Positions 2,716 through 52,100 of a stretch of 64,000 nucleotides of DNA are shown piece by piece. The notes beneath the pieces were generated by a model. The model was not told the DNA's origin. It did no database searches and worked only from the letters and a program-made list of their open reading frames with translations. The stretch lies in contig VJWM01000297.1 in NCBI GenBank assembly GCA_010909165.1, positions 51,982 to 115,981 on the forward strand, in the 5' to 3' direction. The DNA comes from Anthoceros angustus. Taxonomy: Eukaryota > Plantae > Anthocerotophyta. Positions within the stretch are counted from its first letter, which is position 1. Each line of letters starts with the position of its first letter. The position numbers and the translations under genes were made by a program.

Positions 2716-4900
2716 CTAGGTTGACCTCCGCAATTTTGTGTTCAGAGGAGGTTCCTTGTAGGAGGCAATGCATGCGGTTGCCCTCCTCATTGGCCTTCCA
2801 GACACTGCACTTACAAGTGCTCGTTTCTGAGATAACTCTGGACTCTCCACTTTCAAAGCAACAGGACTTAGTCCGTGGCGTGACCGTTTCATGTCCTTGT
2901 CTGTGTCGGGCTCCATCTTTGCTGCTAGTCTTCTTCTATCGGGTGCACCAGTAGCACATTCCAAGTTCTCAGGTGAGCCAACAGCTTCCATAACAACACT
3001 ACTTGGTCTTCGAAGACGTCCCTGCTTCTGGAGCTTGACAGCTGGCTTCAGATAATCTTCTGCTGCAGCTGAAGACACTGCTCTGCCAGTTTCTGACAGC
3101 AAGGACGGGCTTTCAAACGCATCAGCTGGGCTATCTTCCCTTGCTGAGCTGGAGATCGTTTCATCACCCTCACACAATCTGTCCATGGCCTCATGCTCCA
3201 GAACTTTGTATTGCCGGCTGTGAATACTCTTGGGTACAGCCAAGAGCACTTCCTGTGGAACCTTATATGGATCTTCCTTCGTTGCAGCAATACCCCTTGA
3301 CCTCAGGCTCAGCCTGCAAACAATTTGGAACAAGACTTGGTCAAACCTCTTTCACCTCGACCTTCAGAACTTTAGGCTGTGTCATATAGTTTACTCCACA
3401 GTGATTGACAGTACCTTCTATACGTAGGAGGCTCATCTTTCATGCACGCAGACTCACTGCTGCCTGGCCTAGAATTTTGCATGTCCTCCAATAGCTGACC
3501 TGCAGGGCGAATGTATGGTAACATACTCCCAACACCAGATAGTGCTCAGAAAAGGGTCTTGACAGAACGGCACCTGGGGTCATGCTATGTCTTTTGGTCG
3601 AAGAAGCCTTACTCCGAGTTCTCAATGTTGTGGTTGAGCCTTTGCACACATTCTGCACATAGGAACATACACATAATCAACATAAAGGGGCAACAATGTG
3701 ACACAATGCCTGGTAGAACGCCTCTTATCAACCATACCTGCATCTGCTTGTCCATTAGGAGCATATTTCGGCTGTGTTCCAGTTCTTCAAGTCTAAGCTG
3801 CAAGTAGTTTAGAGAGTCAGGTTACTATGTAATCAAGGTGCCAATACAATATGACTAATCCCTAATAGCATCATTGCAAAGCGGCCGCTAGCAACTTTCT
3901 AAGACCAATGAATGTACATGGCTAGTGCATATCGTCTATTGCTAGGACACTTGCACACGTCATTAGGGATATTGCTTTCCCTGCTGCCACAGAACATGGG
4001 AACAATATGGTTAGGTTAGAATTGGCAGTTTCATTGGCATACCCGAAGCTCAGCTTCCATAATCCTGAACATAGACGCCATCTGGTTGTGCTCATGCTGC
4101 AAAATTTTCATCTGTAGAAGTCCAGCAAATGACATGAGCTAAACACCTCTCACACGCATCAGGTCCACCACCCCACAAAAATCTCTGTGCACAAGCGGAA
4201 GTACTATGGTATTACTTGCTCCCTCAGTTGAAGATTTTCCTGTCAATGCCAACATTATCAGGCTGTCATGCCCTTTTACCACTCGAGAACAAAAAAGTGA
4301 GTATGGCAGGAGATACTATTTTAACCGGTCTCTGCAGTCGTTTTGACAAGTGAACTTAGGACAATCAAAGGTTTTGTTCTAACCTTGGACAGCCTGGTAT
4401 TGTGAAATATTATCTCCTCATTCACAGCGGCTCTACGATGCAAATTGAACGTGTACTCCTTTTGAAGCTTTTGCACCTGCTCGGTCTGCGCTGCAATCAT
4501 CGCACTAAGACCTTCGGGTTAAGGAGAAAACAGCGAAGAGGTACAAAAAGAACTAGGTTCACGCTGCAAAACTGCAAGGTCTGCCAACACATGAAACTAG
4601 GAAAGGATACTCCTTCTCGGACAACAATTTCGTCAACGTGAATATCTCCTGCAGCATACAACATTCAAGACAAGCTTGATGCACGAAACAAATTGCAGCA
4701 AAACTGGCCACTTTAGAGCGACAGACTGGAAACATAAAGAATTGATACAGCAGCCATACCTTCTGTAGTTCCTTGTCTTTGTTGGAAGGAATTAAATTAT
4801 CCAGGCTGGCCGTGAACAGCGGCAGGTTTGTTAGATCAGACAGACGCCTCCTGTGACCTGGGGTGGCAGAGGCGCGCTTCCCTTGCCTATCGCCCCCCAT
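2716..4900 (-). CDS. SGO1: Shugoshin-like centromeric cohesion protector (multi-exon; start approximate)
   Basis: C-terminal SGO motif RRATACIASYKEPPLNTKLRR; N-terminal RRRLSDLTN; coiled-coil exons MKILQHEHNQMASMFRIMEAELR (~4050-4120) and LQLRLEELEHSR (~3750-3805). Confidence 0.85.
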
Positions 4901-6342: not shown

Positions 6343-7600
6343 TCATTCCACCCTCTCCGTTTTTAATCTGGAGATGAAGTCGGCATTAACATGCTTCCTG
6401 CCTTCTCTCGTCTCAACAGTAAAGGTGAACTCTTGAAGCAGCAAAATCCAATGGGCTATGCGTCCCAAAAGGTCAACGTTGTTCACAAGGTGCTTGAGAG
6501 CAAAATGGTCAACATGGAACACAAACTCATACGAAAGTAAGTAGTGTCTGAATTTTCTGACCGAGTAGACCATTCTAAGTGCCTCGCGCTCTGTGGTGGT
6601 ATACTTTCGCTCTGCGTCCGTCAGTTGTCGCCCAGCATGGTAGATCGGATAATTTTTCTTCTTTTCATCCCTCTGGCTAAGAACCGATCCGATGGCGAAG
6701 GCTGAAACGTCAACAAAAACATGAAATTTCTTTCTCCAATCAGGCCCCCTCAGCGTTGGCACTGTAGCCAGTGTCATTCGTAGGTCCTGGAATGCCTCCT
6801 CTCGCTCCGACGTCCATTCCCACACCTGATCCTTTCTCAACAGACCCGTTAGTGGGGCAGCCTGTTTGGCGAAATTTGGAACGAAGCGTCTGTAATACCC
6901 AACCATTCCAAGGAAACCATGAAGCTCCTTCAGCGTTGTTGGAGCTCTAAGGGCAGCTATCACCTTTACCTTATCTGGATCAACTTCTATACCTCGATCC
7001 GAAATTCGATGCCCCAACAGGATACCTTCCGACATGCCAAAGTAGCACTTCTCTAGATGCAAACACTATTGTGTTGCACGACATTGTCCCAGACACTTTT
7101 GAAGGTGCATCAAATTGTCCTTCACAGTTCCAAACACGCAAAAGTCGTCCAAGAAAACTTCCATAAAGTCCCGGAGGAAGTCCTTGAATATTTTGACAAT
7201 AGCCCGCATGAAGGAACCAGGTGCCCCTATCAACCCGAATGCATTGCGTTTGTAGGCGTATGTTCCCCAATCCGCTAGTTGGCGTGGCCACTTTCCACGA
7301 GATGTTGTAAATCAAGTGCCCATCCAAGAAGGAATAAGCCATCCTGCCTGTGACCAGAGCTAAAATGTTGTCGATGAAGGGCAACGGAAAATGATCCTTC
7401 TTAGTGACTTTATTCAACCTTCGCCAATCCTGGCAAACCCGGATCTTACCCGACTGTCTCTTAGGCACCACAACGATCGGAGCTACCCATTCTGTGTTGA
7501 CGATAGGATAGATCACATCCGCTTTGAGATACGGCTCCAACTGATCTTTTACCTTCAATGAGTACTTGGGGTTTAACTTGTACTGAATTTATCATCCTTG
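6343..7600 (-). pseudogene. Ty3/gypsy reverse transcriptase-RNase H, frameshifted, no integrase following
   Basis: WVAPIVVVPK, IRVCQDWRRLNKVTKKDHFPLP, shifted-frame MPFGLTNAPATF and FLDDF, GMVGYYRRFVPNFA, RNase H DVSAFAIGSVL, YTTTEREAL, NADFISR then stop. Confidence 0.9.
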
Positions 7601-13874: not shown

Positions 13875-14190
13875 TAAGTCTGGACCTCAAGGTCCAGTCT
13901 CGACTCTGGAGTCCGGACCTCCGGGTCCGGCCTTCTTTCTGGAGTCCGGTCCTCGGGGTCCGGTCTCGACTCTGGGGTTCGGACCTGGGGTCCTTCTTCT
14001 GAGTCCGGACCTGGGTCCGGTCTCGACTCTGGGGTTCGGACCTCGGGGTCCGGCCTTCTTTCTGGAGTCCGGACCTCGGGGTCCGGTCTCGACTCTGGGG
14101 TCCGGACCTCGGGGTCCGGCCTTCTTCTGGAGTCCGGACCTCGGGGTCCGGTCTTTCTTCGGGAGTCCGGACCTCAGGGTCCGGACTCGC
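13875..14190 (-). repeat. ~33-bp hairpin tandem array with alternating spacers (encodes PDPEVRT-type repeats on minus strand)
   Basis: Core GAGTCCGGACCTCGGGGTCCGG repeated ~10 times with spacers TCTCGACTCTG / CCTTCTTTCTG. Confidence 0.9.
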
Positions 14191-14339: not shown

Positions 14340-16770
14340 ACCTGCAGATCCATCAAGCACCCAAGCCGTGAGGGAGAAATGGAGGCGAACTCGGGAGATG
14401 GGGATCTCCTGCACACCAGCAGGAAGTAGAGGAGCGGCGACAAGAGTCGGAGGAGAAGGACACCTGACAGAACTCCAAGACGCTGGAGCAACACGGGATT
14501 CTCAAAGAGAGAATCAAGGACTTGAGCGAGATCGAGCGCCTCTGCTTCTTTGCGGGCGGAGGGGAGCTGACCCAGGCCAAGGAGTTGGCCACGAATTGGA
14601 GAGAGGGCGTGAGCCGGGCGAGGTGACTGAGCCTGGAGAGAGTCATGAGCTCCAGGGCCGGATGGATGGGGGCAAGGGCTATGGACGCGGAGAAGAAGAA
14701 GTCACGCAGAGGGCGGAAGGAGAGCATTGCTGGCCGTTGCGTCAAGCACAACGAGGGAAGATGGAGAAGTGAGGCGGAGGCTGCAGGAGGTAATGGAGGC
14801 TTCCTTGACGGCCTCACGGATTCACCCGATAGCTAACTGGCGGCATTAAACGCCCAACACGCTAACTCACGGAGCACCTTTGGCGAAGGGAGTACCAGGT
14901 GCTCCGGGCCCATGTGGAAGAGGAGATTCAACAAGTCGATTCAGACTGTGCCTACTACCACGCAGAGCTTCTCAAGGCCCTCGAGGTCCTATGCCACCCC
15001 AGGATGGGCGGACCCCGGTAGGGTCGAAGAAGCGAGGAAGGCCCCAAGATGGCAACCGGGACCTTAGGTCTGCTCACCTACGACGCAGCAGTGGAGAAGG
15101 GGAGCAAGACGAGGAACCGGATACAAGGAATGTCGCCGGGAGGTAAGCACTCACCCCACCACGGAGGAAGGGAGGAAGGTCTTGGGGAGGCTACGGAGGA
15201 GGCGGCTGGGAACCCGGCCTGAGAGGCTCGAGGGTGAACCACCGAGAAGTCCAGGCGAGCCCGGTGCTGTGAGTCCGGACTTTGTCCGGACTCAAGAAAG
15301 GCCGGACCCGAGGTCCGGCCTCAAGAAAGTCCTGGACCAGGTCCGGACTCAGTGAACAGACCGGATCCAGAGGTCCTGACTCAGAAGAAGACCGGACCTG
15401 GGTCCGGTCCTGGGGTCGGGACCTCGGTCCGCCTTCTTCTGAGTCCCGGGACCTCGGTCCGGTCTTTTCTCGGGGTCTGGACCTCGGTCCTGACTCATGA
15501 GCTCCTGTGGACTCCCCAAAGGTTCATCCTCACCCACCGGGCCCTCACGCTGTTCCAAGGTTCCGGGGCCTATTCCTTCTATGGCCCCCCCCAGGGCCTT
15601 CCTCTCTTCCCTCCATGGCGGGGTGCGAAGTGCTTACCTCAGGTGCAGTGGCATCCATCAAGCACGGGTAAGCCGTGAGGGAGAAATGGAGGCCAGAACT
15701 CGGGAGATAGGGGATCTCCGGGTACAGCTGCAGGAAGTAGAGGAGCGGCGACAAGAGCTGGAGGACAGCAAGGACACCCTGGAGCTGCAACTCCAAGACG
15801 CGTCGGAGCAACACGGGATTCTCAAAGAGAGAATCAAGGACTTCGAGCGAGATCGAGCGCCTGATCTTCTTTGCGGGCGGAGGGGAGCTCGGGCCAAGGA
15901 GTTGGCCGTCGTCGAATTGGAGAGGCGGGAAGCGAGTGGGCGAGGTGTGAGGCACAGGAGAGGGTGGCGGAGCTCCAGGGCCGGATGGATGGGGGGGCAA
16001 GGGCTATGGGCGGAGAAGAAGAAGCTGCTGCAGAGGGCGGAAGGAGAGCATTGCGCTATATGGGCGGCGATGCAACGAGGGAAGATGGAGAGGCGGCGGA
16101 GGCTGCGAGGTAATGGAGGCTTCCTTGACGGCCTCACGGATTCACCCGATTGGCGAACTGGCGGCATTGCTCACATGGCCCCAGCACCTTTGGCGAAGTA
16201 CCAGTGCTCCGGCCCATGTGGAAGAGGAGATTCAACAAGTCGATTCGGTGTGCCTACTACCACGAGCTTCTCAAGGCCCTCGAGGTCCTATGCCACCCCA
16301 GGATGGGCGGACCCCGGTAGGGTCGGAAGAAGCGAGGAAGGCCCGGGAGGCACATGGCGGGACCTTAGGTCTGTTGTTACGGCCCAGTGGAGAAGGGGAG
16401 CAAGACGAGGAACTGGATACAAGGAATGTCAGCCGGAGGTAAGCACTCACCCCACCACGGAGGAAGGGAGGAAGGTCTTGGGGAGGCTACGGAGGGAGGC
16501 GGCTGGGGGCGGGCCTGAGAGGCTCGAGGGTGAACCACCGAGAAGTCCAGAGCGAGCCCAGTGCTCGTGAGTCCGGACTTTGTCCGGACTCAGAAAGGCG
16601 GACCCGAGGTCCGGCCTCAAGAAAGTCCTGGACTCCAGGTCCGGACTCAGTGACAGGCCGGATCCAGAGGTCCTGACTCAGAAGAAGACCGGACCCAGAG
16701 GTCCGGACCCCGGAGAGAAGACCGGACCTGGAAGTCCGAACTCCAGAGTCGAGACTAGACGTTGAGGTCC
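14340..16770 (+). mobile_element. Two tandem, mainly plus-strand copies of the family A coiled-coil ORF ending in hairpin arrays (15270-15495, 16568-16770)
   Basis: QLQEVEERRQELEDSKDTLELQLQD and HVEEEIQQVDS match minus-strand copies at 24.6 kb and 54-56.5 kb; 14200-15345 ~ 15505-16660. Confidence 0.7.
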
Positions 16771-16799: not shown

Positions 16800-17848
16800 T
16801 CACCTACCCTGACGGAATCATCTCTTAGAGGGCCCGCTGGACGAGGGTCCACCAGCGACATTTTGGAAGTCTCTCAGCCATGTTGAGGAAAGCATTGTCC
16901 ATCCAGGCTATTGCACTTAATGCATGGTGAGACTGCTGTTTTGGATTCGGCCTCATAGCATCCCACGGTGCATTCAGTATGACTCTACTCTTCAACTCTT
17001 CATACCTGCTGTGGCCGAGGCAATACACTCTTTCTGAAGGCGCGCAAGCGGCATCTGAAAGGATCCGGCCCCAGAAGATGAGTAACAACTTTCACGTTAC
17101 CCAGATCCTGTCGCACAACCTGTATCAGGGATTCCAAAAATGTTTCCTACTCCTGCCTCCCCATCCGTAAATAGCGATATCGTTGTTCACGAAACCTTTC
17201 TTTTGTTAATCTGTGGAGACACATCTGATTGCAACATGCCTTTCCGAAATCAATGTTGATGCTTTCGGCTGATATTTTCTAGGATGCAGAACTTCTGCAT
17301 TTTAGAAATTCTTTATAAAACTATATGCAAATATGCCTATTAGGCGATTGTTCTAGTGCATTTTCATGGAATTTTCTAAATTGACAATTTCAATGAAGAT
17401 GCATTAGAAAATCCGACATCGCAAAAATTTGTATATATGTTTCCTAAAAGAAAACATCACAAACTATTTTCTTGAAAATCTTCTTGTTTCTTTCTTTGAC
17501 TTCATTTTCAAAAAAAAAGAAAACAGAAGACAAATTCATGCACATCTTCTAGTGCAGAATTTTTATGTGCATCTATTTAGATGCTTTCTACATAGTATCT
17601 TGCTCTGATACCATGATAATTTATATGGATTATGTAGAATAATTACAACATTAAGTAATTACATATTGATTGAGAATCAAGAAAAGAGTCTAAAAGTGCT
17701 TATACGAAAAGGCAACTTAAACTTAATCTAAACGATGTGTCTATTCACGAAAAGTCGTAACCCTAACGAAAGGATATCTACCTAACTCAATATCAACTAG
17801 GGATTATTTATTGTAACTATCCCTAAACCTATAGTCATGATATCAACA
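16800..17848 (-). mobile_element. Ty1/copia 5' end: LTR (17614-17848), tRNA-Met PBS (17602-17613), AT-rich leader, decayed gag
   Basis: LTR reads TGTTGA...ATCA on minus strand directly followed by TGGTATCAGAGC; downstream decayed frame with YEELKSRVIL and a CIKC knuckle remnant. Confidence 0.8.
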
Positions 17849-17849
17849 T

Positions 17850-20650
17850 AATATCAATAGGTGGCTGACGCTCTGCCCTTCTTTGGCTTGCCCGTCTCTC
17901 TCTTGACCCTAGCCCTAGCCTCATCTCTCTCCCGCTTATACCTCTCCGCTAGTTTCTTGAACTTCTCCAGGCGCTGCCTCCACTGCTCTGGACTCAAACT
18001 TCATTCTGAGCTCCTCAATCGTAGCATGCGCCTTTACTTGGTTCACTGTGGCCTCCTATTGGGTGGACATAACCCACAGCTCCTCACATGTCTTGCTTAG
18101 TGACTCCTCACACTCCGCCTCCCCATCCGTAAATAGCGATATCGTTGTTCACGAAACCTTTCTTTTGTTAATCTGTGGAGACACATCTGATTGCAACATG
18201 CCTTTCCGAAATCAATGTTGATGCTTTCGGCTGATATTTTCTAGGATGCAGAACTTCTGCATTTTAGAAATTCTTTATAAAACTATATGCAAATATGCCT
18301 ATTAGGCAGTTGTTCTAGTGCATTTTCATGGAATTTTCTAAATTGACAATTTCAATGAAGATGCATTAGAAAATCTGTCTGATACTGCAAAAATTTGTAT
18401 ATGTTTTTCCTAAAAGAAAACATCACAAACTATTTTCTTGAAAATCTTCTTGTTTCTTTCTTTGACTTCATTTTCAAAAAAAAAAGAAAACAACAGAAGA
18501 CAAATTCATGCACATCTTCTAGTGCAGAATTTTTATGTGCATCTATTTAGATGCTTTCTACATAGTATCTTGCTCTGATACCATGATAATTTATATGGAT
18601 TATGTAGAATAATTACAACATTAAGTAATTACATATTGATTGAGAATCAAGAAAAGAGTCTAAAAGTGCTTATACGAAAAGGCAACTTAAACTTAATCTA
18701 AACGATGTGTCTATTCACGAAAAGTCGTAACCCTAACGAAAGGATATCTACCTATTAACATCAACTAGGATTATTTATTGTAACTATCCTAAACCTATAG
18801 TCATGATATCAACATAATATCAATAGGTGACGCCCGCCTTCTTTGGCTTGCCCGTCTCTCTCTTGACCCTAGCCCTAGCCTCATCTCTCTCCCGCTTATA
18901 CCTCTCCGCTAGTTTCTTGAACTTCTCAGAGGCGTGCCTCCACTGCTCTGGACTCAAACTTCATTCTGGAGCTCCTCAATCGTAGCATGCGCCCCTTTTA
19001 CTTGGTTCACCAGGGCCTCCTATTGGGTGGACATAACCCACAGCTCCTCACATGTCTTGCTTAGTGACTCCTCACCCCCGCACGTCCCTCACTGCCTTTT
19101 CTCGCTCTCCACTCCTCCAACTTTCCTTGAGCAGCTTCTTGCCGCCCGCACACTAAGCCGTGAGAGCCATAGTCACAGTCGAGAAGGTCCGTCTAGGTCC
19201 GGGTCATTCTTGAGTCGACCTGCAGATCACCAAATTGGGCTGTTCCAGTGCTCATTCTCTTCCACAACAATTGTGTCACTTGCCTCCACTCCTCCAACTT
19301 TCCTTGAGCAGCTTCTCTTGCTGCCCCGCACACTAAGCCAGGTGAGAGCCATAGCTGCCTGGTCGAGAAGGTCCGTCTAGGTCTGGGTCATTGCTGAAGT
19401 CAGACCCTGCAGATCACCAAATTGGGCTGTTCCAGTGCTCATTCTCTTCCACAACAATTGTGTCACTTGCCTCCACTCCAGCTGGACAGGCCAAAGGGGT
19501 ATCCCCAAAAATGTCCTTGAACTCCGGTGAAAACCCTGCTGCCGGAGTTAACCCTTCCTCCCCTAGGAGTTGGTCTGCAACTGCCTCCTCATTCATAAAG
19601 AACTCCCCTAACAGTTGCGACTCGTCCTCTACCCCAGCAGAGGGGATAACCTGCCGTTTTTCTTTTGCTTTCCCCTCCTTCTCCCGTGGTTCTGCTGCCG
19701 TCTTCGACCTGGTGATCCAGGGTGTGGTTGTGGGCTCCTCCTCCACTGCGGTCGTCTTCCCCTTTTTGGTCAACTCCCATCCAGTCGCCACTGCCTTCCT
19801 TTTCCTGCTCCTTGTAACCTCTCCACCTTCATCTGAATCTTCTGGTGCCGCGAATTCCCAACTGCTGGAGTCCTGTCCCGAATCTTCCTTGGACTCTTCT
19901 TCTTCTACCTTGAGCTCCCTGTCCGGCTTCCAGCTATGGAGGGCAGACACAATCTCCAACTCAGTTAGGCACTTGGAATACGCAAACACATGAATCAAGA
20001 AGGGCGAGATCAGAGAGGGACGAGGAGAGGAGGAGAGCAAATTTGCCCTCTCTTTACACGCCCTCTCAAAAATTATTCTGCCCCAGTCAATCTGCGTGCC
20101 CTTAACTACTTCATGGAGGAAGACCAGGAAGTGGTCCACCATGTGATCCAACTTTTCTGTTCTGCAGGAAACACAAAATCCACTTGGCCAGCCCCACGAG
20201 TTGCACAGACGCGAGTTGGCGGGTCACCCATCCATTGTTAACCCGCACCTCCCCAGGCTTCATGATTGCTTCTGCTGCAGCCTTTAAGGTCTTCTTCCTC
20301 TGGGTGTCAATCACCAGACATCTTCCGACTCCTCGCGCCCATACACTGCCCGGAAGAGTTCCAGGTCCCAATTTTGTGGCCTCTCCCTCATGTCACCCTC
20401 CTGTGACTTGGCCTTCAATTGGCGGGCACACTCCTGCACCAATGCCGGACTGACATAACACCATTTCTTCTCCATGAAGCTCAATCCCAACTCCTGCATA
20501 AGGCCATCAGCTCTAACCTTCCAGTGGTCCATGTTGGGCCACTGCGTAGTGGGAATCTCTGCCGCAGCCCGAGGCGCCATCTCTTCCTTCCCGCTCCTGA
20601 CCGGTTCAAACTCCTACAGGCTCTACCTCCAACCCACAATCCAGGAGGAA
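17850..20650 (-). pseudogene. ORF-A: plant-transposon accessory protein (Athila/Tat extra-ORF-like domain + acidic linker + coiled coil), frameshifted and partly duplicated
   Basis: ADGLMQELGLSFMEKKWCYVSPALVQEC...IDWGRIIFE...SLISPFLIHVF pattern typical of TE accessory ORFs; C-terminal LEKFKKLAERYKRERDEARARVKRE. Confidence 0.55.
18117..18814 (-). mobile_element. Second near-identical copy of the copia leader, PBS (18572-18583) and LTR (18584-18814)
   Basis: 17155-18116 and 18117-19075 are near-identical direct repeats differing by small indels. Confidence 0.8.
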
Positions 20651-21129
20651 ATTCTCCTTCGAGCTCCGCGATCACCCTGCTCCGCTCAGTCCCGGACTTC
20701 CTGCCTCAGAGCCTACCCCAGCCAGTTGCGCCTCGACGCGTGTTGGGGTTCTCTCCCTCCCCGCCGCTGTCGCCTTGACCGACCACGCACTCCACCAGTG
20801 CTCCTGCCGCAAATGTGCACTTGCGCCGTAAAAGGAAACCCTCGTTCCTGACGCGGCTACATGCGCGCGTCCTTCTCTCAACTCCGCTGAGGTCCTGCCC
20901 TGTCGCCGACTTCAGATCGCTTGCCCCTTGAAACCTCGCAGACCTCCAATACCCCGGTGTGGTCTTCTCCCAGTTGCGCTCCGACTTGCTCAGCTTACTG
21001 TCAGCCCTGGCTCCACCACTAGGGTTGTTAACTCCCCCTGGCCTGTATGACCCATACGTGGCCACCGTTGTGGAACTAGCTACCTCCCCACTCCCCTGTA
21101 CCACTGTTGTTGAATGAAGGGTACCCCTA

Positions 21130-21335
21130 CCATATATAGACACTTTTTATTTCTAAAAATCCCAAGGTCTGAGGACTCTCTGGCCTGTCCTACAGAGATT
21201 CGAGGTCCAAGGACTAATTATTTGTAAAAATATTATTGCCATGGGCCAAGGATCACTTTTAGTATAAAAGGCCTTGCCTCGGACGATTCCTAAGCGCTCC
21301 ATCACACAAAACATAAGAAAAACAAAAAAAAACGT
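21130..21335. promoter_or_regulatory. Putative bidirectional promoter between ORF-A (minus) and the transposase (plus)
   Basis: TATATA at ~21133; GTCCAAGGAC 21205-21214, GGCCAAGGA 21244-21252, TATAAAA 21263-21269, then A-rich leader; homologous segments at 53.5 kb and 62.6 kb. Confidence 0.55.
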
Positions 21336-21553
21336 TCAAACCGATAGTCAAGGGAAGGGTTAGTGTACATGTGGTCTTCCACATTCGGCTGAGTTGGTTG
21401 CATGTGGCTGTTAGATTTGTACCAATTACCAGGACGTGGCTTTTCCGCAGTATATAGCCTAGGGGGCTGACTCTTACATGTCGATAGGCACCTTCGGCAT
21501 AGCCGAAGACTAGGAAGGCACTCAGGACTTGTACTTTGTTTGTGTCGTGTGCA

Positions 21554-22839
21554 GAGAAGTATCAAGTAGCATTAGATGCCCACCGCGATCGATTGTTGGC
21601 GGAATAAGCAAAGATGACAAAACACCGCAGCAACAGTTACGTGGAGCCGCACAAGTATATTTTATTGGCCATAGATGGTATGGATCAGAAGAAGACGGAG
21701 ATCCCGCACATTCTGAGGTGGCCAAAGAATCTGGATGAGGAATGCCGCATTTCAGTACATGTTGTGGGGTGCATGATCCACAACTACACCCACAATGCTA
21801 GAGCCTTTTTACACTATGCCAACCTTCGGAATGATGCCAATTTGACTACTAGCGGAATTCAAGATGTCATCCACAACTATGATGGTGTCTTGCCCAAGGT
21901 TCTGTATTTGCAGCTGGACAACACAAGCCGGGAGAACAAGAATCAGCTGCTATTCGCGTATCTCAATATGTTAATGGACATGGGCACCTTTAAAAAAGTG
22001 AAAGTGGGCTTCCTTCTTGTGGGCCACACTCACGATCAAATTGATCAAATGTTTTCATGCTTCTCTAAAAGCTTGAAATACAAAGAGGCGCACACACTGC
22101 CGGCATTAGCAGACATTCTCAAAGCTTCGTACACACCATCGCCAGAGGTGAAAGTGTTGACGGAGGTCCCTGATTTCCGCACCTATGTTTGGCCAAAACG
22201 GAGAGGGCACAGGAGGCAAAAGTACGTTGCAGTAGTAAAAAAGTTGAATAATCTGTCGTTCCAGCACCAGTTCAAAAATACGCGAGAAGAAAAACCGGAC
22301 CGCGGCCTCGTCACAATCATCAGGAGCTAGCAATATTCAACATCACCGCTATGGGAAACTGAGGCTGGCTTGGAGTTTTTGAATTTCATGCCTACCGAGG
22401 CTATCACAGCTGCGTCATTATTGTCTTTGCGGGCTCGAGACAAAAAATGAACAGCAGGCAACCTCGCACCAACCGAAGGTGTGGCTCATCTGAAGAAAGG
22501 GTTACTAGGACTACGACCATATGTCACAGTTGAAGAATACCAGTGGTGGGAAGACTTTTGGGTGGACCAGAAAGAGATCGCTGTTATTATGGAGAACCAC
22601 ATCGGCCTCATTTTGCAGCGTCCTTGGAAGTGGTTTCCACGAGCAGAAGTAGAGCATATAGCCCGACCCCTTCAAGTACCTAATGAAGCTTTGCTAGAGG
22701 AAGCATTATTGAGGGACCTCCCACAACATGATATGTACGTGGGGGCATATCAAAACCTCGGGAGGAAACAGCGTCAAATGGCACGATTGAATGACGATAT
22801 AACAGAAATACGGAAGGGGATGTTTCTGGCAGTGCCTTG
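21554..22839 (+). pseudogene. RNase H-fold DDE/D transposase (Sola-like), one premature stop, frameshift near 22330, 3' end cut by an LTR-A insertion
   Basis: Motifs LAIDGMDQKKTEIP, LYLQLDNTSRENKN, GFLLVGHTHDQIDQMFS; superfamily assignment from memory of motif pattern. Confidence 0.75.
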
Positions 22840-23830
22840 TGTGGCGCTACTTTCGCTGACGGCCAGCCGGGCGCGCACCAATCCCGTGTCGTTGCAATAT
22901 GGGGTCCATTCCCAAGGGAATGACTTGTTCCGTTTATACACGCCTGTTACTCAACACGCTCTCCGTCGTTAGGAAAGATGACCTACCTGAGGCCGCCTAC
23001 AGCAACGCGTTCGTTTTCCGTCCTCTAACCGCTCTACTCGTTTACCGTACAGGCCCGGGATAGCCAAACGTTTAAGGACCCATTTACGTTCGAAACCTAC
23101 CGATCTTCTCTTACTCCCCCCCCTACTTCGTCTCGCCTACCGTTCTTACTTACATCCAATATGCCAGTTGAGGGTCACGGTCGGGTATGCGTGGGCGACG
23201 AACTTCCGTGTTCGTTCACCAAGTCCCTCCGTCCGGCTCTGCACGCCCTCTCGGAGTCCTGCTGCTCACGCCCGCTCCGGTCTGTCGGCCGTCGGACCTC
23301 TGTCCGGGAGGAGCATGGGTCCGAGGTCCTCCGCACCAGTACACACACGCCCACGCGTTAGGGTCCGTCACCAGGACCTGGATCAGTGTCTCCGGAGTGG
23401 TCTTGCCTGCTCAGTGACTCGGGACTCGCGTTAGCAAGGGACACACAAAGGCCTGCAAGGATAACGCGACATCAACCCCAAAAGAAAGATCCGTTTACTG
23501 GAGTGGCAGCCGCCCTCTTATACTACGTTATGAGGGAGCGCCTTTATTACACCCCTACTCTAAGTTAATGTCCAGCTCTCTATGTCTTAGCGCGTGGCCC
23601 TCTCTCTTCCCCATTTTCCCTACCTACGTCTACGGCGGTGGGGCTATGGTTGACCAGGATTCCTTCCTGGCACTGGCGGCCCAATCCCTAGCTCTGGTAT
23701 CTGCGGCGCACCCAATCGGATGATCCGCGACCTCGGTCAGCGAGGCTCTTTCCTACCTCGATTTTGTCAGGCACTCTGGGAGGGCGACAACCAGTGACCA
23801 CCAAGTCTTCCTCCTCGCTGTCCATTGGTG
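22840..23830 (-). repeat. LTR-like repeat family A copy inserted in the transposase
   Basis: Begins TGTGGCG at 22840 exactly where the transposase frame (..GMFLAVPC) loses homology-like character; shares motifs with the other A copies. Confidence 0.65.
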
Positions 23831-23954: not shown

Positions 23955-24260
23955 CTGAGACCGGACCTCGGGGTCCGTCCTCATCTCCTGACCTCGGGAT
24001 CCGTCCTCACCTCCTGAGTCTGGACTTTGGGGTCCGTCCTCACCTCCTGAGTCCGGACCTCGGGGTCCGTCCTCACCTCCTGAGTCCGGACCTCGGGGTC
24101 CGTCCTCACCTCCTGAGTCCGGACCTCGGGGTCCGTCCTCACCTCCTGAGTCCGGACCTCGGGGTCCGTCCTCACCTCCTGAGTCCGGACCTCGGGGTCC
24201 GTCCTCACCTCCTGAGTCCGGACCTCGGGGTCCGTTCTCTCTGATCTCTGGACGTCCAAG
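23955..24260 (-). repeat. 33-bp tandem repeat, ~8 near-perfect copies (QEVRTDPEVRT)
   Basis: Unit CACCTCCTGAGTCCGGACCTCGGGGTCCGTCCT. Confidence 0.95.
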
Positions 24261-24831
24261 TCCGGAGTATCCCCCAAGGGACCGTCTTCCCTAACCGGAC
24301 CCCCCCTTCCTTCATCCCCCTGCGCCGGGTCCCGACTTCCCCTCCCATGTTCTGCTCCGGGGTTCTCGCTTCCCCTCCCGATGTTGGGTGCGACGGACTT
24401 ACCTCTGGCCTTGTTGTCTCCGTCGCATCTCCCTCCTCCGGTTGTCCTTCCTCCTCTGGGTCCTCCCCACTGCTGCTCTCGTCACCAAACAGGGCTCCCA
24501 GATTCCCTGTGGCGGTGCTCTCTCCCAAGCCCTCGTCCCTCCAGACTTCCTCCGACTCCTCTGGCGGACCTTCGATTTCAGCAGCGTGATGTGCTGCCTC
24601 CATCGCCTTCAGGAGCTCTGCATGATAATACTCGAAGTTGGAGTCGACCTGCTGGATGGCCTCCTCCACATGGGCGCGAAGCACTCGATATTCTCGCCTC
24701 CAGAGGTTCTCCAGCAGCTGGGCGTGCCTGGTTGCTTGTTGTGCCGTCCCCATCGTGAGGTCATTCAGCCGGGTCCTGGCCGAGTTCGGTGAAGCCGCTA
24801 AGGCGCCTGTCGCGCAATGGCCCATGTGCAT
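24205..24831 (-). CDS. Family A accessory ORF (short helical domain + acidic tail leading into the 33-bp array)
   Basis: RAHVEEAIQQVDSNFEYYHAELLKAME shared with 14.9, 16.2 and 54.3 kb copies. Confidence 0.55.
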   Translation of the reverse strand: MHMGHCATGALAASPNSARTRLNDLTMGTAQQATRHAQLLENLWRREYRVLRAHVEEAIQQVDSNFEYYHAELLKAMEAAHHAAEIEGPPEESEEVWRDEGLGESTATGNLGALFGDESSSGEDPEEEGQPEEGDATETTRPEVSPSHPTSGGEARTPEQNMGGEVGTRRRGMKEGGVRLGKTVPWGILRTWTSRDQRERTPRSGLRR

Positions 24832-25055
24832 CTTGATCTAACTGCAGGATCACTCAACCGCAAAGAAGAAAATTAGTCCCCGCCTTGACCAAGAATCGCA
24901 AAGTTCCTGGCCTATGGCCAAGGAACAAGGACAAATAAAGGGAGGCATAAATAGCCTTCGGACCGCGAACAGCCCCCCTGGAAAATCTGGGGGTGAACAC
25001 CCATAGCTTTTCCACATCAAAATTGTCAGCTACAATCCAGCAGCTAAAACACAAC

Positions 25056-27727: not shown

Positions 27728-28559
27728 TGTGGGAGGAAAACCCCGGGGCTTTCGAGATTCCCCCTCTAGCGGCCACACTTATCCCACTGTCGCTTTGTAC
27801 GTTGGGTTTCGTCCCATGAGACTTGTGTGAACGGTCGGATTCTGGGGAATCGATCACTGCTTGCAGCTACACACTACCTCAGCCTTCTAAACAAGCAAGG
27901 CGCCCACTACTCTCCCCCTTACAGTAGCTGCACCACCTGCACTGCTTCGAAAATTCACCAATCCTCGACCTACAACGACACCACACAATTGCAGGTCATG
28001 CAATCTTCTCCACTCAGGGAGCGCCCTCTTACTTGCAGATTTGGGATTCGTCCCTTAGGCTCTGCTTGTGGCCTTCCACTATTACCTACACTCTAATCCT
28101 CTACTCATCATTCCACTCATCATCTTCCTCGACGCTCAACTCATCTCCTCATCCTCCTCCTATTCTAACCTCAATTCAGGCTCACTGGCCTCGGCTCGCC
28201 CTTACGGCACAACTGCCTGGGGTCCGCCTACAAGCCAGCAAGTTCTTCCGTGGGCCAGTTGCTATGAGTTTGACACCAGACAGCGAGAATCTCCAGGGAG
28301 TCTTTCCGTGTAGTCTACTTGCGTAGATGACCTACTCACAAAGTCCCTACCCAGGATTTGGCATGAGACCCTCACAACATCCCTAAGTCTTCTTGATACC
28401 GCAAGTACCCCTTCACTGCATTCTTGAGGTGGCTTGAACTGAGCGGGACTAATGAACACATGACCGACCAAACTCACTCTCAAGCAATTCGCGCCATCCC
28501 TCATAAGACACATGACTTTTCACCTCACCCCTTCACGAGCATCACACATCTTCGCCACA
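27728..28559. repeat. LTR-like repeat family B (solo-LTR-like)
   Basis: TGTGG...CCACA termini; homologous to 59680-60300 (GGAAAACCCCGG, CCATGAGACTTGTGTGAA, GCTATGAGTTTGACACCA); no target-site duplication seen. Confidence 0.6.
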
Positions 28560-29414: not shown

Positions 29415-30695
29415 TCAATGTACTATGCTATCCAAAGTAGGGAAGAACACTCCAATTTCATCGGAATAAGACTTGAAGTTATGGTCCACAAATGAAGAAA
29501 AACGAGGGAGCCACTGCCACGACCTCTGCTGAAAATCGTACACGAGAACAGCTGCGCTTGCTGATCCCCCACCTGTGAAGTACAACAAGTCCCCCTGTCC
29601 AATGCATCTAAACTCCTCAAAATTGACCTTTTGCAAAAACATCTTGCAAATCGATTTAGGCATTTTGTCCACCTCCACCCATTTCTCTTCATGTTCCTCG
29701 TCAAGCTCCCAGATGCGAATAGGCCCCTTAGAGTAGTGCAGACCTCGTTCCCAGCAGTTATCAATCCCTCCAACCATGAGGAGACGGCCATGGCGCTCCA
29801 CCAAGTGGGGCTCCACCACATACCTTGCACACAGTCCACGTAAAGACCAGAGCCATGAATGTGATACTCACCCGGCGATCCCACTACGTTACAAGCCAAG
29901 CCCATTAATGCCGCCAGCAAGCACCTCAGAGACGAGTTTAGGAGTAGAAGGTGAAGATTGTGCGGGTAGGTACCTGGGCACTGGAACTGGTAACTCCCCC
30001 CAAGTTGAGTTAGCGACATCGTATTGGATGACTCTGTTGGGCAACCTGGCCATTCCATACAGGTGGGTGCCATTCACAAACACGCCAAGCTCATCCTCGT
30101 AGCCAACAAGTCCACGGGGAAGTCTGCCACCGTATGTCCATCGGCCGGTGGCGGAGCTATAAATGTCTGTCATTCGATCCTCACAGAAGTTGCGGTCTGC
30201 AAGCACTATGGTGAATGTCCTGGAAACCTTGTCCACTGCCATGCCTGCCAGGAAAGGAGGACCCAAAGGACGCCGGTGCGGCAAGCACGGCAACTTGCAG
30301 AATGCTTTCCGACCATTGTAAATAGGGTTGCACACATAGAAGACAGAGCTATAAGAATCGATGGAGCAGAAGCAAAACAGCCCTCCTGCACTTGCGATTA
30401 GAGCGTACCTATCGTTGCTGGAGAGGAAAGGCATGAGAATCTGATGCCATCTACCCAGTGCGGGGTTGTAAGCAGCAACACCTTCACACCCTCCCACTAC
30501 AGAATGGAAGACGAACAAGGGCTGGCGAGGAGGGAGATGACTGCGCTCATGCAGGTGCAAGAAGCTGGGAGATATAATCAGTGTGTTCCAAGCTTTGCAG
30601 GTGCCTCGGAGCTGAAGTAGGTTCAAGACGGGAAGTTTGGCAAGAATCCTTTCGATAAGCTCATTCGGAAGGCGACTCCAAATCTTAGAGTCCAT
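29415..30695 (-). CDS. F-box protein with kelch-like beta-propeller C-terminus; reading-frame break at ~29820-29930 (intron or lesion)
   Basis: WSRLPNELIERILAKLP..LRGTCKAWN F-box; ASAGGLFCF, FYVCNP, GRLLMVGG, IWEL..W.EV.KMP, VLVYDF...W.WLP. Confidence 0.85.
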
Positions 30696-30702
30696 GTTCC
30701 AT

Positions 30703-30762
30703 AAGCCTGCTCAGGCACTTTGAAGCCTGCTCAGGCACTTTGAAGCCTGCTCAGGCACTTTG
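30703..30762. repeat. 20-bp tandem repeat x3 immediately upstream of the F-box ATG
   Basis: AAGCCTGCTCAGGCACTTTG x3. Confidence 0.95.
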
Positions 30763-43438: not shown

Positions 43439-46400
43439 TTGGATCCAGGCTTGACTCCTTTGGTTCAGGTTGTGCGTATCATGGCTGCCTCCCGTGCCGC
43501 ACGTCAATCGCACTTGAAGTGCTCCGCTGGCCTCATGTCCGGCTTTTGCAAGCCAGCGTGGGTGGGCTCTGCGGATGTGCACATGGGTTGGCGTGGAGCT
43601 GCATCACTACCGGATGATCTTGACCCTCGCAGGCCTGCAGGATATGAAAGGGGCGTAACGGCGGAGACTGTGAGCCAGCTATGTCAGCAGGGGCAGCTCA
43701 CCGAGGCTGTCGAGGCCCTGGGAGTTCTGGTGCACACACGCTGTCGAATTACCCAACCTCTCTTTCATACGGTCCTGAGGAAATGTGCGGTCCAGAGGGA
43801 TCTAGTTCTGGGTCGCCGTGTGCATGCTCTCACTGTGAAAGGGGGAAATGAGTCGGACACGTTCTTGTGCAACCATATCCTGCGAATGTATGCTGCTCAT
43901 GCCAGGTTGCAGGAAGCGATGGATGTTTTTGCACTTGTGGCCAGACCAGATGCCTTTACGTGGTCTGCCATAATCTCTGCTCATGTTAAGTACGGACATG
44001 ATAAGGAGGCCATAGAACTGTATCGCCGCATGCCAACGTCAGGCATTAAGCCAGATGGGCATGTGTTTGTAGCAGCGCTTCAGGCTTGTGCAAGGGCAGC
44101 AGACTTGAAAACTGGGCAGGAGGTTCATGCTCATGTGTTGGATAGCGGGATTAAACCTGACTTGTTTCTTTGCAATACTTTGGTGGACATGTATGCGAAG
44201 TGTGGCATCTTGGACGAGGCGCAAAGGGTGTTTGACGGAATTGTTCACAAGAACGTGGTAACATGGAACACCTTGATAGCAGGGTATTCCCAGCAGAGCA
44301 TGGGACAGGAAGCCCTTGGTCTTTACAGGGCTATGCAAGAAGAAGACATTGTTACACCCGATTCAGTGACTTTTGTGAGCCTGTTGCAGGCATGTGCTAC
44401 TGTCGGTCCTGCGGCACTGGAGAAGGGAAAACAGCTTCACGCACAACTCACAGAACGAGGATTTCAAGCTGATGTGTTTGTCGCCTGCAGTTTGGTGAAC
44501 ATGTATGCTAAGTGTGGCAGCTTGGCGGATGCTCGGGAAGTTTTTGATGGGCTTTCTCGCAAAGAAGTCACGACGTGGAATGCTATGATTGCAGGGTATT
44601 CTCAGCAGGGCATGGGACAGAAAGCCCTTTCTCTCTGCACATCTATGCGAGAAGAAGGCGTCGTTGTACCCAATTCTGTGACATTTGTGTGCCTCCTTCA
44701 GGCATGTGCAAGTGTCGGCACCATGGGTCTGAAGGAGGGGAAGCAGCTTCACGCCCAAATTAGAGAACGAGGGCTTCAATCTGATGCGTGTGTGGCCAGC
44801 AGTTTGGTGAACATGTATGCAAAGTGCGGCAGCCTGGAGGATGCCCGAGGCGTGTTTGACGGACTTGCTGAAAAAAATGTAGTTACGTGGACAGCTCTGA
44901 TAGCAGGATATTCTGAGCAGGGCATGTGTCTGGAAGCCCTTTCTCTTCACAGTGCCATGCAAGAAGGCGGCATGGCTGCACCCAACCCTGTGACGTGTGT
45001 GTGCCTTCTGCAGGCATGTGCAAGTGTGGGCGCCCCAGCCTTGGAGAAGGGAAAGCAACTTCATGCACAGATGGGAGAACATGGGCTTCAGGCTGATGTA
45101 TCTGTAGCCAACAGTTTGGTGAACATGTATGCAAAGTGTGGCAGTCTAGAAGATGCTCAGCGTGTGTTTGATGGACTTCCTCATAAAAATATGGTGACGT
45201 GGAATGCGATGATTGCAGGATATTCTCAGCAGGGCAGGGGTCAGGAAGCCCTTTGTCTTCACTTTGCTATGCAACAAGAAGGCATCAGTGCTCCGGACCC
45301 TGTGACCTTTGTGTCCCTCCTGCAGGCATGTGCAAGTGTGGGTAACCCAGCACTGGAGAAGGGGAAGCAGCTTCATGCACAAATTAGAGAACGGGAACTC
45401 CGAGCTGATGTCTTTGTAGCCAGCAGTTTGGTTAACATGTATGCAAAGTGCGGCAGCCTAGAGGATGCTCGGGCAGTGTTCGACAGACTTGAACAGAAAA
45501 ATGTGGTGACATGGAGTTCGATGATAGCTGGCTATTCCCAGCAGGGCATGGGGCAGGAAGCCCTTGCTCTTTACAAGGCTATGCAAGAAGACGGTCTTGT
45601 CGCACCCAATAGTGTGACATTTGTGTGCCTTCTGCAGGCATGTGCAAATTTAGCTGCCTTGCATCTGGGAAGGCAGTTGCATGTGCAGATAAAAGAACAA
45701 GGGCTGCAAGCTGATGCCCTTGTAGCCAGCGGTTTGATAAACATGTATGGGAAGTCTGGCAGCATGGTTGATGCACAACTGGTGTTCAAGGCATTGCCTG
45801 AAAGAGACGTTGTCACCTGGAATGCACTGATTTCAGGCTACACCCGGCAAGGCGATAGTCAAATGGTCTTTGATTTGTTTGACAGAATGAGAGAGGATGG
45901 CATACAGCCAGTCGGCATCACTTTCCTTTGTCTGCTCACAGTATGCAGTCATTCGGGTCTAGTGAACAAGGGGCAAGAGATATTTGAGGCCATGCGCAGA
46001 CACCATGGAATCACTCCTACAGTAGAGCACTACTCATGCATGGTGGACCTTCTGGGGCGTGCAGGCCGGGTGGAGGAGGCACTAACTGTGGGAAGGACAA
46101 TGCCTGTACTGCCTACTGTTGCGGTTTGGCACAACCTATTGGGAGCTTGTCGAAAGTGGAGCAATGTGGAGGTGGGGCGCCATGCTTTTGATGAGGCGGT
46201 CCAGATGGACAGTAAAGATCCTGCAGCATATGTCTCCATGTCAAACATATACATCGGTGCCCAGATGTGGGAGCAGGCAGAGGAGATGCAAGTGAGAAGA
46301 AAAGTATGCGGGGCATGGAAGCAGCCTGGCCAGAGCTGGTGGACAGACATGGAGGGACTGGTGCATAGTTTTTTGGTTGGGGATAGGATTCATCCCGAGA

Positions 46401-46519
46401 GTGGAGGCATATATGCAAGACTGCAACAACTGTTTTCCAAAATAAAAAACGAAAGCTGTGTGCTAGAGTCGTCAATTGATTATGGGAAGGAGCATCAGCT
46501 GATTGAACACCTAGGGTGA
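43439..46519 (+). CDS. PLS-class PPR protein with E1/E2 and WW-type PG box, truncated DYW (organellar RNA-editing factor-like), intronless
   Basis: Repeating P-L-S triplets (VTWNAMIAGYSQQG / VTFVCLLQACASVG / LVNMYAKCGSLEDA), EHYSCMVDLLGRAG, LLGACRKWSN, AYVSMSNIY, KQPGQSWWTD..VHSFLVGD.IHP; start ATG uncertain. Confidence 0.95.
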   Translation: MDPGLTPLVQVVRIMAASRAARQSHLKCSAGLMSGFCKPAWVGSADVHMGWRGAASLPDDLDPRRPAGYERGVTAETVSQLCQQGQLTEAVEALGVLVHTRCRITQPLFHTVLRKCAVQRDLVLGRRVHALTVKGGNESDTFLCNHILRMYAAHARLQEAMDVFALVARPDAFTWSAIISAHVKYGHDKEAIELYRRMPTSGIKPDGHVFVAALQACARAADLKTGQEVHAHVLDSGIKPDLFLCNTLVDMYAKCGILDEAQRVFDGIVHKNVVTWNTLIAGYSQQSMGQEALGLYRAMQEEDIVTPDSVTFVSLLQACATVGPAALEKGKQLHAQLTERGFQADVFVACSLVNMYAKCGSLADAREVFDGLSRKEVTTWNAMIAGYSQQGMGQKALSLCTSMREEGVVVPNSVTFVCLLQACASVGTMGLKEGKQLHAQIRERGLQSDACVASSLVNMYAKCGSLEDARGVFDGLAEKNVVTWTALIAGYSEQGMCLEALSLHSAMQEGGMAAPNPVTCVCLLQACASVGAPALEKGKQLHAQMGEHGLQADVSVANSLVNMYAKCGSLEDAQRVFDGLPHKNMVTWNAMIAGYSQQGRGQEALCLHFAMQQEGISAPDPVTFVSLLQACASVGNPALEKGKQLHAQIRERELRADVFVASSLVNMYAKCGSLEDARAVFDRLEQKNVVTWSSMIAGYSQQGMGQEALALYKAMQEDGLVAPNSVTFVCLLQACANLAALHLGRQLHVQIKEQGLQADALVASGLINMYGKSGSMVDAQLVFKALPERDVVTWNALISGYTRQGDSQMVFDLFDRMREDGIQPVGITFLCLLTVCSHSGLVNKGQEIFEAMRRHHGITPTVEHYSCMVDLLGRAGRVEEALTVGRTMPVLPTVAVWHNLLGACRKWSNVEVGRHAFDEAVQMDSKDPAAYVSMSNIYIGAQMWEQAEEMQVRRKVCGAWKQPGQSWWTDMEGLVHSFLVGDRIHPESGGIYARLQQLFSKIKNESCVLESSIDYGKEHQLIEHLG

Positions 46520-49111: not shown

Positions 49112-52100
49112 TTATCGTGAGGGCTTGTATGTGAGTCCACCATTGCATCCACGGGCGAATCCTCTACAAGTGCCAAATTCGCATCGCTCCATCTCCACGT
49201 CAAAGCTATCATTCGCACCTAAAACTCTGGTCTTCATTGATATCATTTTGGTGTAAATCGTCGTTTGTGGATTGACACCATCTGACATCAATGTCTGTCC
49301 ATCCATCGTCCATAAGCTCCGGTTGTCGTCTTTAACCTCTTCGCACTCAATGCCACGACTTGGGCTTTCAAGGTCTTTCTCACTACAAACCTCTTTGGCC
49401 CAGGCGAGATGGTCCCCTTGATGCGGCTCAAAAGTCAGCTCCTCATGCATCGGGCAAGACATCAACCGCAGTGTATCGTGGGCAATGTAACTGCGCATCT
49501 CAAGTCCGCCTCTATTGCACGATTCGGCCACGGCGGCTAGTGTCGTAGTCCTGAGCATGCATCAATAACCCGGTCTCCCTCCTTGGAGAATGTCCTCACG
49601 AGTTTCATCATAAGACCCAATGGTCTGGTATGGGCACACTACCAACTTGTCATGAGAGTAAAACTGCTTTCGACGATGAGGGTGTCCAATAACGATCTTC
49701 CATTGTTGAAGGTCCTGCATCACATTTGGCATCATGGCAGCCTCCTTGAACATCCATCTTTCACACCCCATCCAAGCATAGCGTATTCCATCCTCAAATC
49801 CTCCTCGTCGTTGTTCATGTTAGTCTTATCCCAAATGAATGACACCAAGCCGCCTTTGGCACACCACTTCCATAGCCTCCCTTGCCGTATGGGCTTCTTC
49901 AACACCATGCATGGCGATAATTGAATCGTCATTTTCCGTTTTCTCGAAACTTTGAAACACAAGACCCATCATGGATAAATCCATTCGTTTGTCCATTGGC
50001 CCGATGTCAAATCCACGGGAACATCCATGACAAGAAGGGTGTATTTCCTTCCCTCAAAACCCACGCATGTCGAGCGTTGCGGGCTTCCACAATCTTGGAC
50101 TGTTTCTCGATCGGAACATTGAATATCCGGAGTCCTTCTTGCAAGTCCTTGTCCAAAGCCGCTGCTCATTCTCTAAGCCCTTCCAATTATTGATCTCGAA
50201 AATAAAATGCGGAGTCGTCGGGCGGCTTTGTCAAGACCTCCACGTCCTTGATTCTTGCCAAAAAACAACTGTTAGAATGCGGCCGGCTCAAGCACCTCAC
50301 AACTACTAAGCGGTGGGGCGCGGCGGCGGCTCCTCGGCGATCGCGGTGATCCGCCGCGCGGCGCCCTGCCCCGCGGTGGGGCAGCGGTGGGGGCGCCCGG
50401 CTCTCCGCGATGCGAGAAGGCGGCCGGGCGTGGCGCCCCTGCTACGGGGCGGGGTGGGGGCGGCCGGCGGTGGCCCTGCACTCGATGGCGGCGGCGGGGC
50501 GCCGGCGGCCGGCGGCCGGCGGCCGGCGAGCGGATGGACATGGCCGGCGGCTGAAGTGAACATGGAAAGAAGGTCCGTGCATCACATTTGGCATCATGGC
50601 GTACATCGTCCTTGAACATCCATCTTTCACACCCCATCCAAGCATAGCGTATTCCACGGTCTCAAATCCTCCTCATCGTTGTTCATGTTAGTCTTATCCC
50701 AAATGAATGACACCAAGCCGCCTTTGGCACACCACTTCCATAGCCTCCCTTACCGTATGGGCTTCTTCAACACCATGCATGGCGATAATTGAATCGTCAT
50801 TTTCCGTTTTCTCGAAACTTTGGAAACCTGACACCCCATCATGGATAAATCCATTCGTTTGTCCATTGGCCCGATGTCAAATCCACGGGAACATCCATGA
50901 CAAGAAGGGTGTATTTCCTTCCCTCAAAAACCACGCATGTCGAGCGTTGCGGGCTTCCGTCTTGGACTGTTTCTCGATCGGAACATTGAATATGGAGTCC
51001 TTCTTGCAAGTCCTTGTCCAAAGCCGCTGCTCATTCTCTAGGCCCTTCCAATTATTGATCTCGAAAATAAAATGCGGAGTCGTCGGGCGGCTTTGTCAAG
51101 ACCTCCACGTCCTTGATTCTTGCCAAAAAACAACTTTGTTAGAATGGCTCAAGCACCTCACAACTACTAAGCGGTGGGGCGCGGCGGCGGCTCCTCGGCG
51201 ATCGCGGTGATCCGCCGCGCGGCGCCCTGCCCCGCGGTGGGGCAGCGGTGGGGGCGCCCGGCTCTCCGCGATGCGAGAAGGCGGCCGGGCGTGGCGCCCC
51301 TGCTACGGGGCGGGGTGGGGGCGGCCGGCGGTGGCCCTGCACTCGATGGCGGCGGCGGGGCGCCGGCGGCCGGCGGCCGGCGGCCGGCGAGCGGATGGAC
51401 ATGGCCGGCGGCTGAAGTGAACATGGAAAGAAGGTGCAGGAAAATGGCTTACCTTTCCCGCAAATGCCGTTTGGAATCGCGAGCATTTCATCGATTGAGT
51501 CTTTGGGGATACTCTGCCGAACCTCTTCAAAAGAAGAGCAACCAAGGTGTTTTGCCATCGCCACTTGAATAATATGGAATTTCTTCGAAGAGATATATCG
51601 TCATCCATTCCTTTCGTGTCAATGAGACCGCCAACACTTTCTCTCAGAAGCGGTGATAAGTATCTGCCCACACTCCCCATTGGAATCCCTTGAAATGATT
51701 TCCAAGGCTTTGCAAGCATATCTTTTGGCTTCACATAGTCTATTTTGTTGGCCTCCTCGGCCACTTTCCGCTTCACCTTGCTCTTCTTGCTTGTCCCTGC
51801 TATCACATGCTTCTTCCGCCTGCAACTCCCCGCTTCCCACTTGGTAAATATCTTGTCTACATTTTCCCATACCCTACCCTCTTGTTTCGCGATGCATAAA
51901 ATGTGGGTCATGTTGTCAACCTTGTTCTGTTTATAAACATCATCTTCGCGTGCTTCATCATCCTCAATAAGCCCCAACACCTTGTACAGGTTGAATTTCC
52001 ATGTCATGGTCATCTGCATATCATCCCGTTTCGCAATAATCAATTCATCACGCAAATACCTCACCTGCTCTATAAAATTCATCTTCCGGCGCTTGTCGGA

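Follow-up and report, generated by a model that had tools for sequence, protein, structure and literature searches.

A non-coding segment, which we call P, recurs beside transposon pieces in the 64,000-nucleotide stretch of Anthoceros angustus DNA analysed here (the window), and it is a real repeat. Judging from its sequence, we consider it on balance likely that P is a 5' control module conserved in a family of multi-gene DUF7869 (Sola-like) transposons that has since decayed, and that it holds predicted core promoters placed back to back. Every copy of P in the window is a fossil.

Segment P is a repeat with three copies in the window

The sample consists of the three copies of P within the window, two of which may derive from one ancestor. 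The first, P21 (20997–21381, plus strand, 385 nt), was delimited by local alignment and nhmmer and is matched as an inverted repeat by P62 (62514–62863, minus strand), which spans the whole of P; in the pairing of 20997–21381 with 62863–62514 the nhmmer E value is 2e-28, and no significant homology continues past 20997 or 62863. The third copy, P53 (53415–53615, plus strand), retains the core only, that is, P positions 117–332. It is far more diverged than P62, yet its match to P21 is significant: with the single 53-kb sequence as query, nhmmer pairs 53415–53615 with 21113–21328 at E 4e-6, a two-copy profile made from P21 and P62 finds the same interval at E 6e-6, and global alignment of the P21 and P53 cores gives z = 10.9 against shuffles. 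The sequence-only reading, an earlier note made from the letters of this DNA, had aligned 21205–21335 with 53493–53610, and both intervals lie inside this significant match. It had also placed an inverted copy at 62560–62705, which is genuine and longer than was supposed. A fourth, weaker copy that it proposed at 24913–24955 was returned by none of our profile or single-sequence queries (E > 10), and that interval has just one GGCCAAGGA 9-mer and a TATA-like word in common with P.

P is non-coding, contains TATA-like boxes, and forms an AT-rich island with a GC content of 0.39–0.47 (0.46 in P21) against about 0.6 in the flanks. It has no Rfam match and no tRNA, it was not found in the loci of Riccia or of the other relatives that were fetched, and its best-conserved blocks gave no exact-pattern match in metagenome contigs. 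All three copies lie 12 to about 900 nt from relics of a DUF7869 transposase or of a ParB-methyltransferase, and the P core is conserved where the adjoining DNA is not; the earlier claim that P is linked to a transposon family is thus upheld.

Boxes within P and their conservation

Common to the three copies are a CCATATATAG box (with one mismatch in P62), three CCAAGGA-type boxes and an A-rich run. In P21 the CCATATATAG box (21130–21139) is followed by a CCCAAGG box (21161–21167), by GTCCAAGGAC, which we call box b (21205–21214), by GGCCAAGGA (21244–21252) and TATAAAAG (21263–21270), by the A-rich run (about 21316–21333), and by a possible splice donor, GG/GTTAGT, at 21359. The series in P53 is CCATATATAG (53433–53442), a first GGCCAAGGA (53470–53478), box b GTCCAAGGAC (53493–53502), a second GGCCAAGGA (53540–53548), TATAAATA (53559–53566) and AAAAACAAAAA (53605–53615). 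Box order and one spacing have been kept between these diverged copies: in both P21 and P53 exactly 10 nt separate GGCCAAGGA from the TATAAA behind it, with the A-rich run some 45–55 nt beyond TATAAA. P62 has lost the TATAAA box. In the window as a whole CCAAGGA occurs 28 times (13.9 expected), seven of these inside the three P copies, and GGCCAAGGA occurs nine times (1.1 expected), four of them at other, unrelated places.

When the 21- and 53-kb loci are compared near P, only two islands align, namely the P core (z = 10.9) and the start of ORF-A (z = 6.9 at the nucleotide level), an open reading frame to the left of P that is described below. The spacer between them and the DNA to the right of the P core both give z values of about 0. 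Two aligned islands in surroundings of this kind are what one would expect of a regulatory block under constraint beside a coding start. P might instead be passenger DNA, an internal non-coding stretch that has no regulatory role and whose shared boxes are identity left over in decaying copies. We regard this as possible but rather unlikely. All the genes linked to P are dead, and P21 and P62 are 70–75% identical where the adjoining exon fragments are 76% identical, which is what neutral decay of copies with one origin should produce. Between P21 and P53, however, only the P core and the start of ORF-A are conserved, with unalignable DNA in the spacer and outside, and the box spacing has been kept exactly.

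Transposase relics beside P

To the right of P21 a DUF7869 (Sola-like) transposase pseudogene is represented by its last exon, the one that bears the DDE motif (21555–22972, plus strand); it was identified by Pfam and by its relatives. Its ORF at 21614–22330 matches Pfam DUF7869 (PF25273) at E 2e-48, and the DUF7869 blocks DGMDQ, LDN..N and GHTHDxIDQxF are visible in it. We recovered 4049 relatives, the best at 56% identity; no database protein is more than 60% identical. The label "Sola-like" expresses a probable affinity that follows from a match in architecture with the elements described in passages of PMC12477816, and it sets the transposase beside Sola1 by description rather than by profile.

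The reading frame is interrupted by stops at 21605, 22328, 22448 and 22970, and coding similarity begins before the ATG, at 21555, and extends through stops to about 22840–22970. About 380 codons are missing from the N-terminal side of the pseudogene, and its C-terminal domain is absent too; full-length relatives carry 260–520 residues ahead of the region that matches this exon. An acceptor-like TGTGCAG (21548–21554) precedes the exon, and the position of the intron is the same in Riccia: the last exon of a Riccia sorocarpa gene (P0009) runs from residue 383, and similarity in the window from residue 379. A second, heavily decayed fragment of the same exon (62053–62502, plus strand; 76% identical to 21548–22019) has its beginning at this splice-acceptor point as well and breaks off at VGH codons. 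Since both copies start at this intron/acceptor point, they are relics of last exons. On the plus strand no upstream transposase exons were found between ORF-A and 21555. A Cys-rich remnant of an N-terminal DUF7869 transposase exon lies on the minus strand at 17093–17278, with a tandem duplicate at about 18118–18241. This remnant sits within a 0.96-kb tandem duplication (17149–18111 and 18112–19075).

Because some 380 N-terminal codons are missing with their exons, the junction of P with the transposase at 21 kb cannot be a native junction of promoter and gene. It is also the sole junction of sense orientation; at 62.5 kb P is antisense to the transposase fragment, which inverted P62 abuts at GFLLVGH codons in what is a rearrangement junction. 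A simple inversion at 62 kb was considered and rejected, as the inverted remainder of the transposase that it predicts is absent upstream of 62053. The inverted repeats found in the window are P21/P62 and the palindrome arrays (below) only, and no element ends were identified.

The limits of the P21/P62 homology bear on another explanation, that P, with or without ORF-A, is part of an unrelated element, for instance a 5' or solo LTR, that has nested within Sola-type elements more than once. Read on the minus strand, P21 and P62 open with TG and close with CA at these limits, a TATA-like box is found after some 250 nt of the unit, and some 420 nt downstream comes ORF-A. The explanation seems to us quite improbable, since P62 lacks a target-site duplication, P is not followed by a primer-binding site of tRNA type, the window holds no second direct-orientation copy of P, and Pfam finds no reverse transcriptase or gag family downstream. 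Moreover, P53 retains the core only and not the supposed LTR ends, and the position of three out of three copies beside one transposon family would demand a strong nesting bias. The sequence-only reading had itself raised the possibility of an unrelated LTR; the TG..CA ends are the only one of the expected marks that we found, the duplication at P62, the tRNA-type site, the partner copy and the retroelement family all being absent.

ORF-A and a layout shared by two loci

ORF-A (19414–20580, minus strand) is split over three overlapping frames (20580–20311, 20371–20111 and 20151–19414) and is therefore frameshifted or spliced. A distance of 975 nt separates its ATG (20580, minus strand) from the transposase exon (from 21555, plus strand), so the head-to-head arrangement described earlier at 21 kb is correct, with a transposase that lacks its 5' exons. 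ORF-A has no Pfam family, no relatives in a word-based protein search and no Riccia match, and the best score in the protein atlas, 0.84, is a lead only; it is thus an ORF without known relatives, perhaps not a functional gene. A decayed homologue of its first 48 or so codons is present at 52926–53058 on the minus strand, reading MAP..QWPNMD.W.VR and then KRWSYVNPSPV in a shifted frame. The first 23 codons match 53055–52990 (minus strand) with an E value of 7e-4 over the whole window, and in the second block, where the frame has shifted at 53 kb, KKWCYVSPALV of ORF-A is paired with KRWSYVNPSPV.

This 53-kb ORF-A start is located between P53 and the ParB exon. An ORF-A start therefore stands to the left of P at both 21 and 53 kb and is P's only constant neighbour. 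The right-hand neighbour is different for each copy: a sense transposase exon after 173 nt at P21, an array at P53 (where no gene lies to the right of P), and an antisense transposase fragment at P62. Beyond P the 21- and 53-kb loci are collinear, the order in both being ORF-A start, P, 33-nt array (23986–24289 and 53778–54049), a 130-nt block (24597–24727 and 54276–54399) and a 0.6-kb block (27729–28318 and 59686–60253). The interval from P to the array consists of the transposase exon and about 1 kb at 21 kb and of about 160 nt at 53 kb. In view of this collinearity, the 53-kb copy looks like a derivative without the transposase and not like a copy overwritten by foreign DNA. The earlier suggestion that the right side of P53 had been overwritten by an insertion of a repeat termed family A is therefore unlikely, as the array keeps its place in the collinear order of the two loci and Riccia has arrays of a similar kind. 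It had also been suggested that the promoter segment serves interchangeable cargo genes; since an ORF-A start is found at both loci, ORF-A and the methylase are not alternative cargo, and the two loci are variants of one layout. The ORF-A start to the left of the 53-kb copy, the collinear layout and the finding that ORF-A and methylase are not interchangeable are new here.

A probable ParB-methyltransferase relic and its counterpart in Riccia

A ParB-methyltransferase had been named as the left neighbour of the 53.5-kb copy. A probable decayed homologue of such a gene is there (sum E 3e-4), but the ORF-A start intervenes between it and P. This ParB-like/DNA methyltransferase relic (49112–52508, minus strand) is broken and internally duplicated; it has no Pfam match and was recognized by weak but collinear tblastx matches, which include VLGGNHT.AA, to the N6_N4_Mtase gene of Riccia. 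The transposase fragment nearest to this weakly matched relic is 9.5 kb away. A 0.87-kb tandem duplication, 96% identical, lies within the relic (49708–50574 and 50569–51435).

In Riccia sorocarpa (GCA_046195345.1) the same two genes are paired. At one locus (L002) an N6_N4_Mtase gene lies divergently upstream of a DUF7869 transposase, and a second locus (L003) has the same divergent transposase/methylase pair. The transposase cores are 39–54% identical to that in the window and have the same intron position before the DDE exon, and there are palindrome arrays on either side of the methylase gene, including one between methylase and transposase. The Riccia loci differ from the window in that they have no P-like sequence and no ORF-A, contain other palindrome sequences, and have genes annotated as intact. 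Divergence of the two Riccia copies is too great for a comparison of non-coding DNA. At the Chara and JGI metagenome loci no methylase was found within the flanks. The Riccia arrays are at 6377–6553, 4343–4460 and 2496–2733 in L002 and at 542–740 and 2576–2782 in L003. Their palindromes are family-specific, for example TGTATGCGGGAATACA with its complement, and GTCCATGA..TCATGGAC.

Palindrome arrays and possible binding of the element's own proteins

The array beside P53 (53778–54058) consists of 33-nt tandem units, each of which contains the near-palindrome AGTCCGGACT; it begins about 160 nt to the right of P53 and about 1.3 kb upstream of the ParB exon. Related arrays are found at 13877–14189, 15284–15490, 16582–16743 and 23986–24239. 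The array core GTCCGGAC occurs 27 times in the window, against a null of 1.2, and 26 of the 27 are inside arrays; the window contains no long perfect palindromes. Since arrays flank the Riccia methylase gene and the literature places such arrays beside ParB-fused genes, the array is more likely to be the element's own than an insertion.

The arrays suggest a further explanation of the CCAAGGA boxes, which could be sites bound by the element's own ParB domain or transposase, P being then a binding or subterminal region related to the arrays. Box b, GTCCAAGGAC, in P21 and P53 consists of the half-sites of GTCCGGAC with a two-base spacer added, and GTCCWWGGAC, which occurs three times in the window (null 0.3), is found in P21 (21205), in P53 (53493) and at the end of an array (14193). 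P53 is close to an array, P21 and P62 are inverted relative to each other, and ParB-fused accessory genes adjoin inverted-repeat arrays in red-algal Plavaka elements (bioRxiv 10.1101/2025.02.11.637652). However, P is not terminal, because homology between the loci runs past it into ORF-A, there is no inverted partner of P21 downstream, and both half-sites are present in just one of the three CCAAGGA-type boxes. We therefore think this explanation improbable as an account of P, and we treat the likeness between box b and the half-sites of the array core, a likeness of sequence, as a lead and not a result. Binding of the boxes by the element's own proteins would be compatible with a promoter role of P. 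The two ideas can be combined, in that P might be a self-recognition switch whose GTCC-AA-GGAC boxes are spaced variants of the parS-like GTCCGGAC and candidate targets for binding, and perhaps methylation, by the element's ParB-methyltransferase. Such a switch would couple an epigenetic mark of the element to the transcription of back-to-back genes in a land plant; we consider it a very long shot.

P as a candidate control module

The arrangement that we favour for P, that of a 5' control module, may be pictured as follows. The element family would also carry a ParB-fused DNA methyltransferase and palindrome arrays. The constant partner of P would be the start of ORF-A, read away from P on the opposite strand, and a palindromic TATATATA box in the P core would face ORF-A. 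A second box (GGCCAAGGA, 10 nt, TATAAA), about 130 nt further on and followed by an A-rich leader, would face the opposite way. One putative core promoter would thus serve ORF-A, and possibly also the methylase gene that lies downstream, and the other putative core promoter would serve the gene across P, expected to be the transposase where the element is intact. The 21-kb copy would then be a deletion derivative in which P has been fused to the last transposase exon, the 53-kb copy would have lost its transposase, and the 62.5-kb copy would be a rearranged fragment. We infer the promoter activity, its direction and the gene served by the second box.

Several observations weaken the control-module reading. 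The right-hand neighbour of P is different in every copy, and the 21-kb junction is not native, its N-terminal exons being missing. The nearest TATA-like box is 380–550 nt from the ORF-A ATG, which is long for a leader, and TATA-like words are common in AT-rich DNA. Finally, ORF-A, for which there are no known relatives, may not be a working gene.

If P is a control region, it would provide a handle on how a methylase-carrying transposon switches on and on whether the methylase acts on its own element. A P profile would in addition be a simple probe for collecting and sorting copies of the family in the genome.

Relation to known elements

The sequence-only reading was right in proposing a multi-gene transposon, an idea that had already been published for Sola1-1_Ec32, a giant Sola-1 element of Ectocarpus. 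In the passages of PMC12477816 that describe it, Sola1-1_Ec32 carries its transposase and a ParB-methyltransferase gene on opposite strands, and many of its copies have a pseudogenised transposase. The likeness to the elements in the window lies in the large size with accessory genes, in the pseudogenised transposases and, probably, in the pairing of transposase and methylase; here, by contrast, the host is a land plant, the copies are fragments without defined ends, and there is an extra, orphan ORF-A. Those passages mention no shared upstream segment like P. What the window adds to this kind of element, for which there were earlier descriptions from algae, is three fossil copies of P and their layout.

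Comparable associations are known from another transposase superfamily. Plavaka/KDZ elements of Bostrychia have a ParB-2OG oxygenase, PAG3, as an accessory gene (bioRxiv 10.1101/2025.02.11.637652), and fungal KDZ elements carry TET/JBP (PMC3918813, as cited in the passages of PMC12477816 on this subject). As far as these sources describe them, such elements resemble ours in combining a transposase with a potentially DNA-modifying enzyme and in having a ParB-type domain with tandem inverted-repeat arrays alongside, but they differ in the transposase superfamily and in carrying an oxygenase rather than an amino-methyltransferase.

Setting of the window

Self-comparison shows that the window is repeat-rich, with a GC content of 53%, many decayed repeats and tandem duplications. 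It includes a PPR gene of 1026 codons with E/E+ motifs at 43439–46519, which marks the DNA as that of a land plant. To the right of inverted P62, an ORF at 63407–63997 (plus strand, GC 0.67) has a VWA_2 domain (Pfam E 3e-6) and runs off the end of the window; its look is that of a bacterial BatA-like protein (VVVLTDGRF). Just past the repeat block, an ORF at 29423–30695 (minus strand) has F-box and Kelch/beta-propeller matches and is probably a host gene, and at 30703–30762 a 20-nt unit, AAGCCTGCTCAGGCACTTTG, stands three times in tandem without a mismatch.
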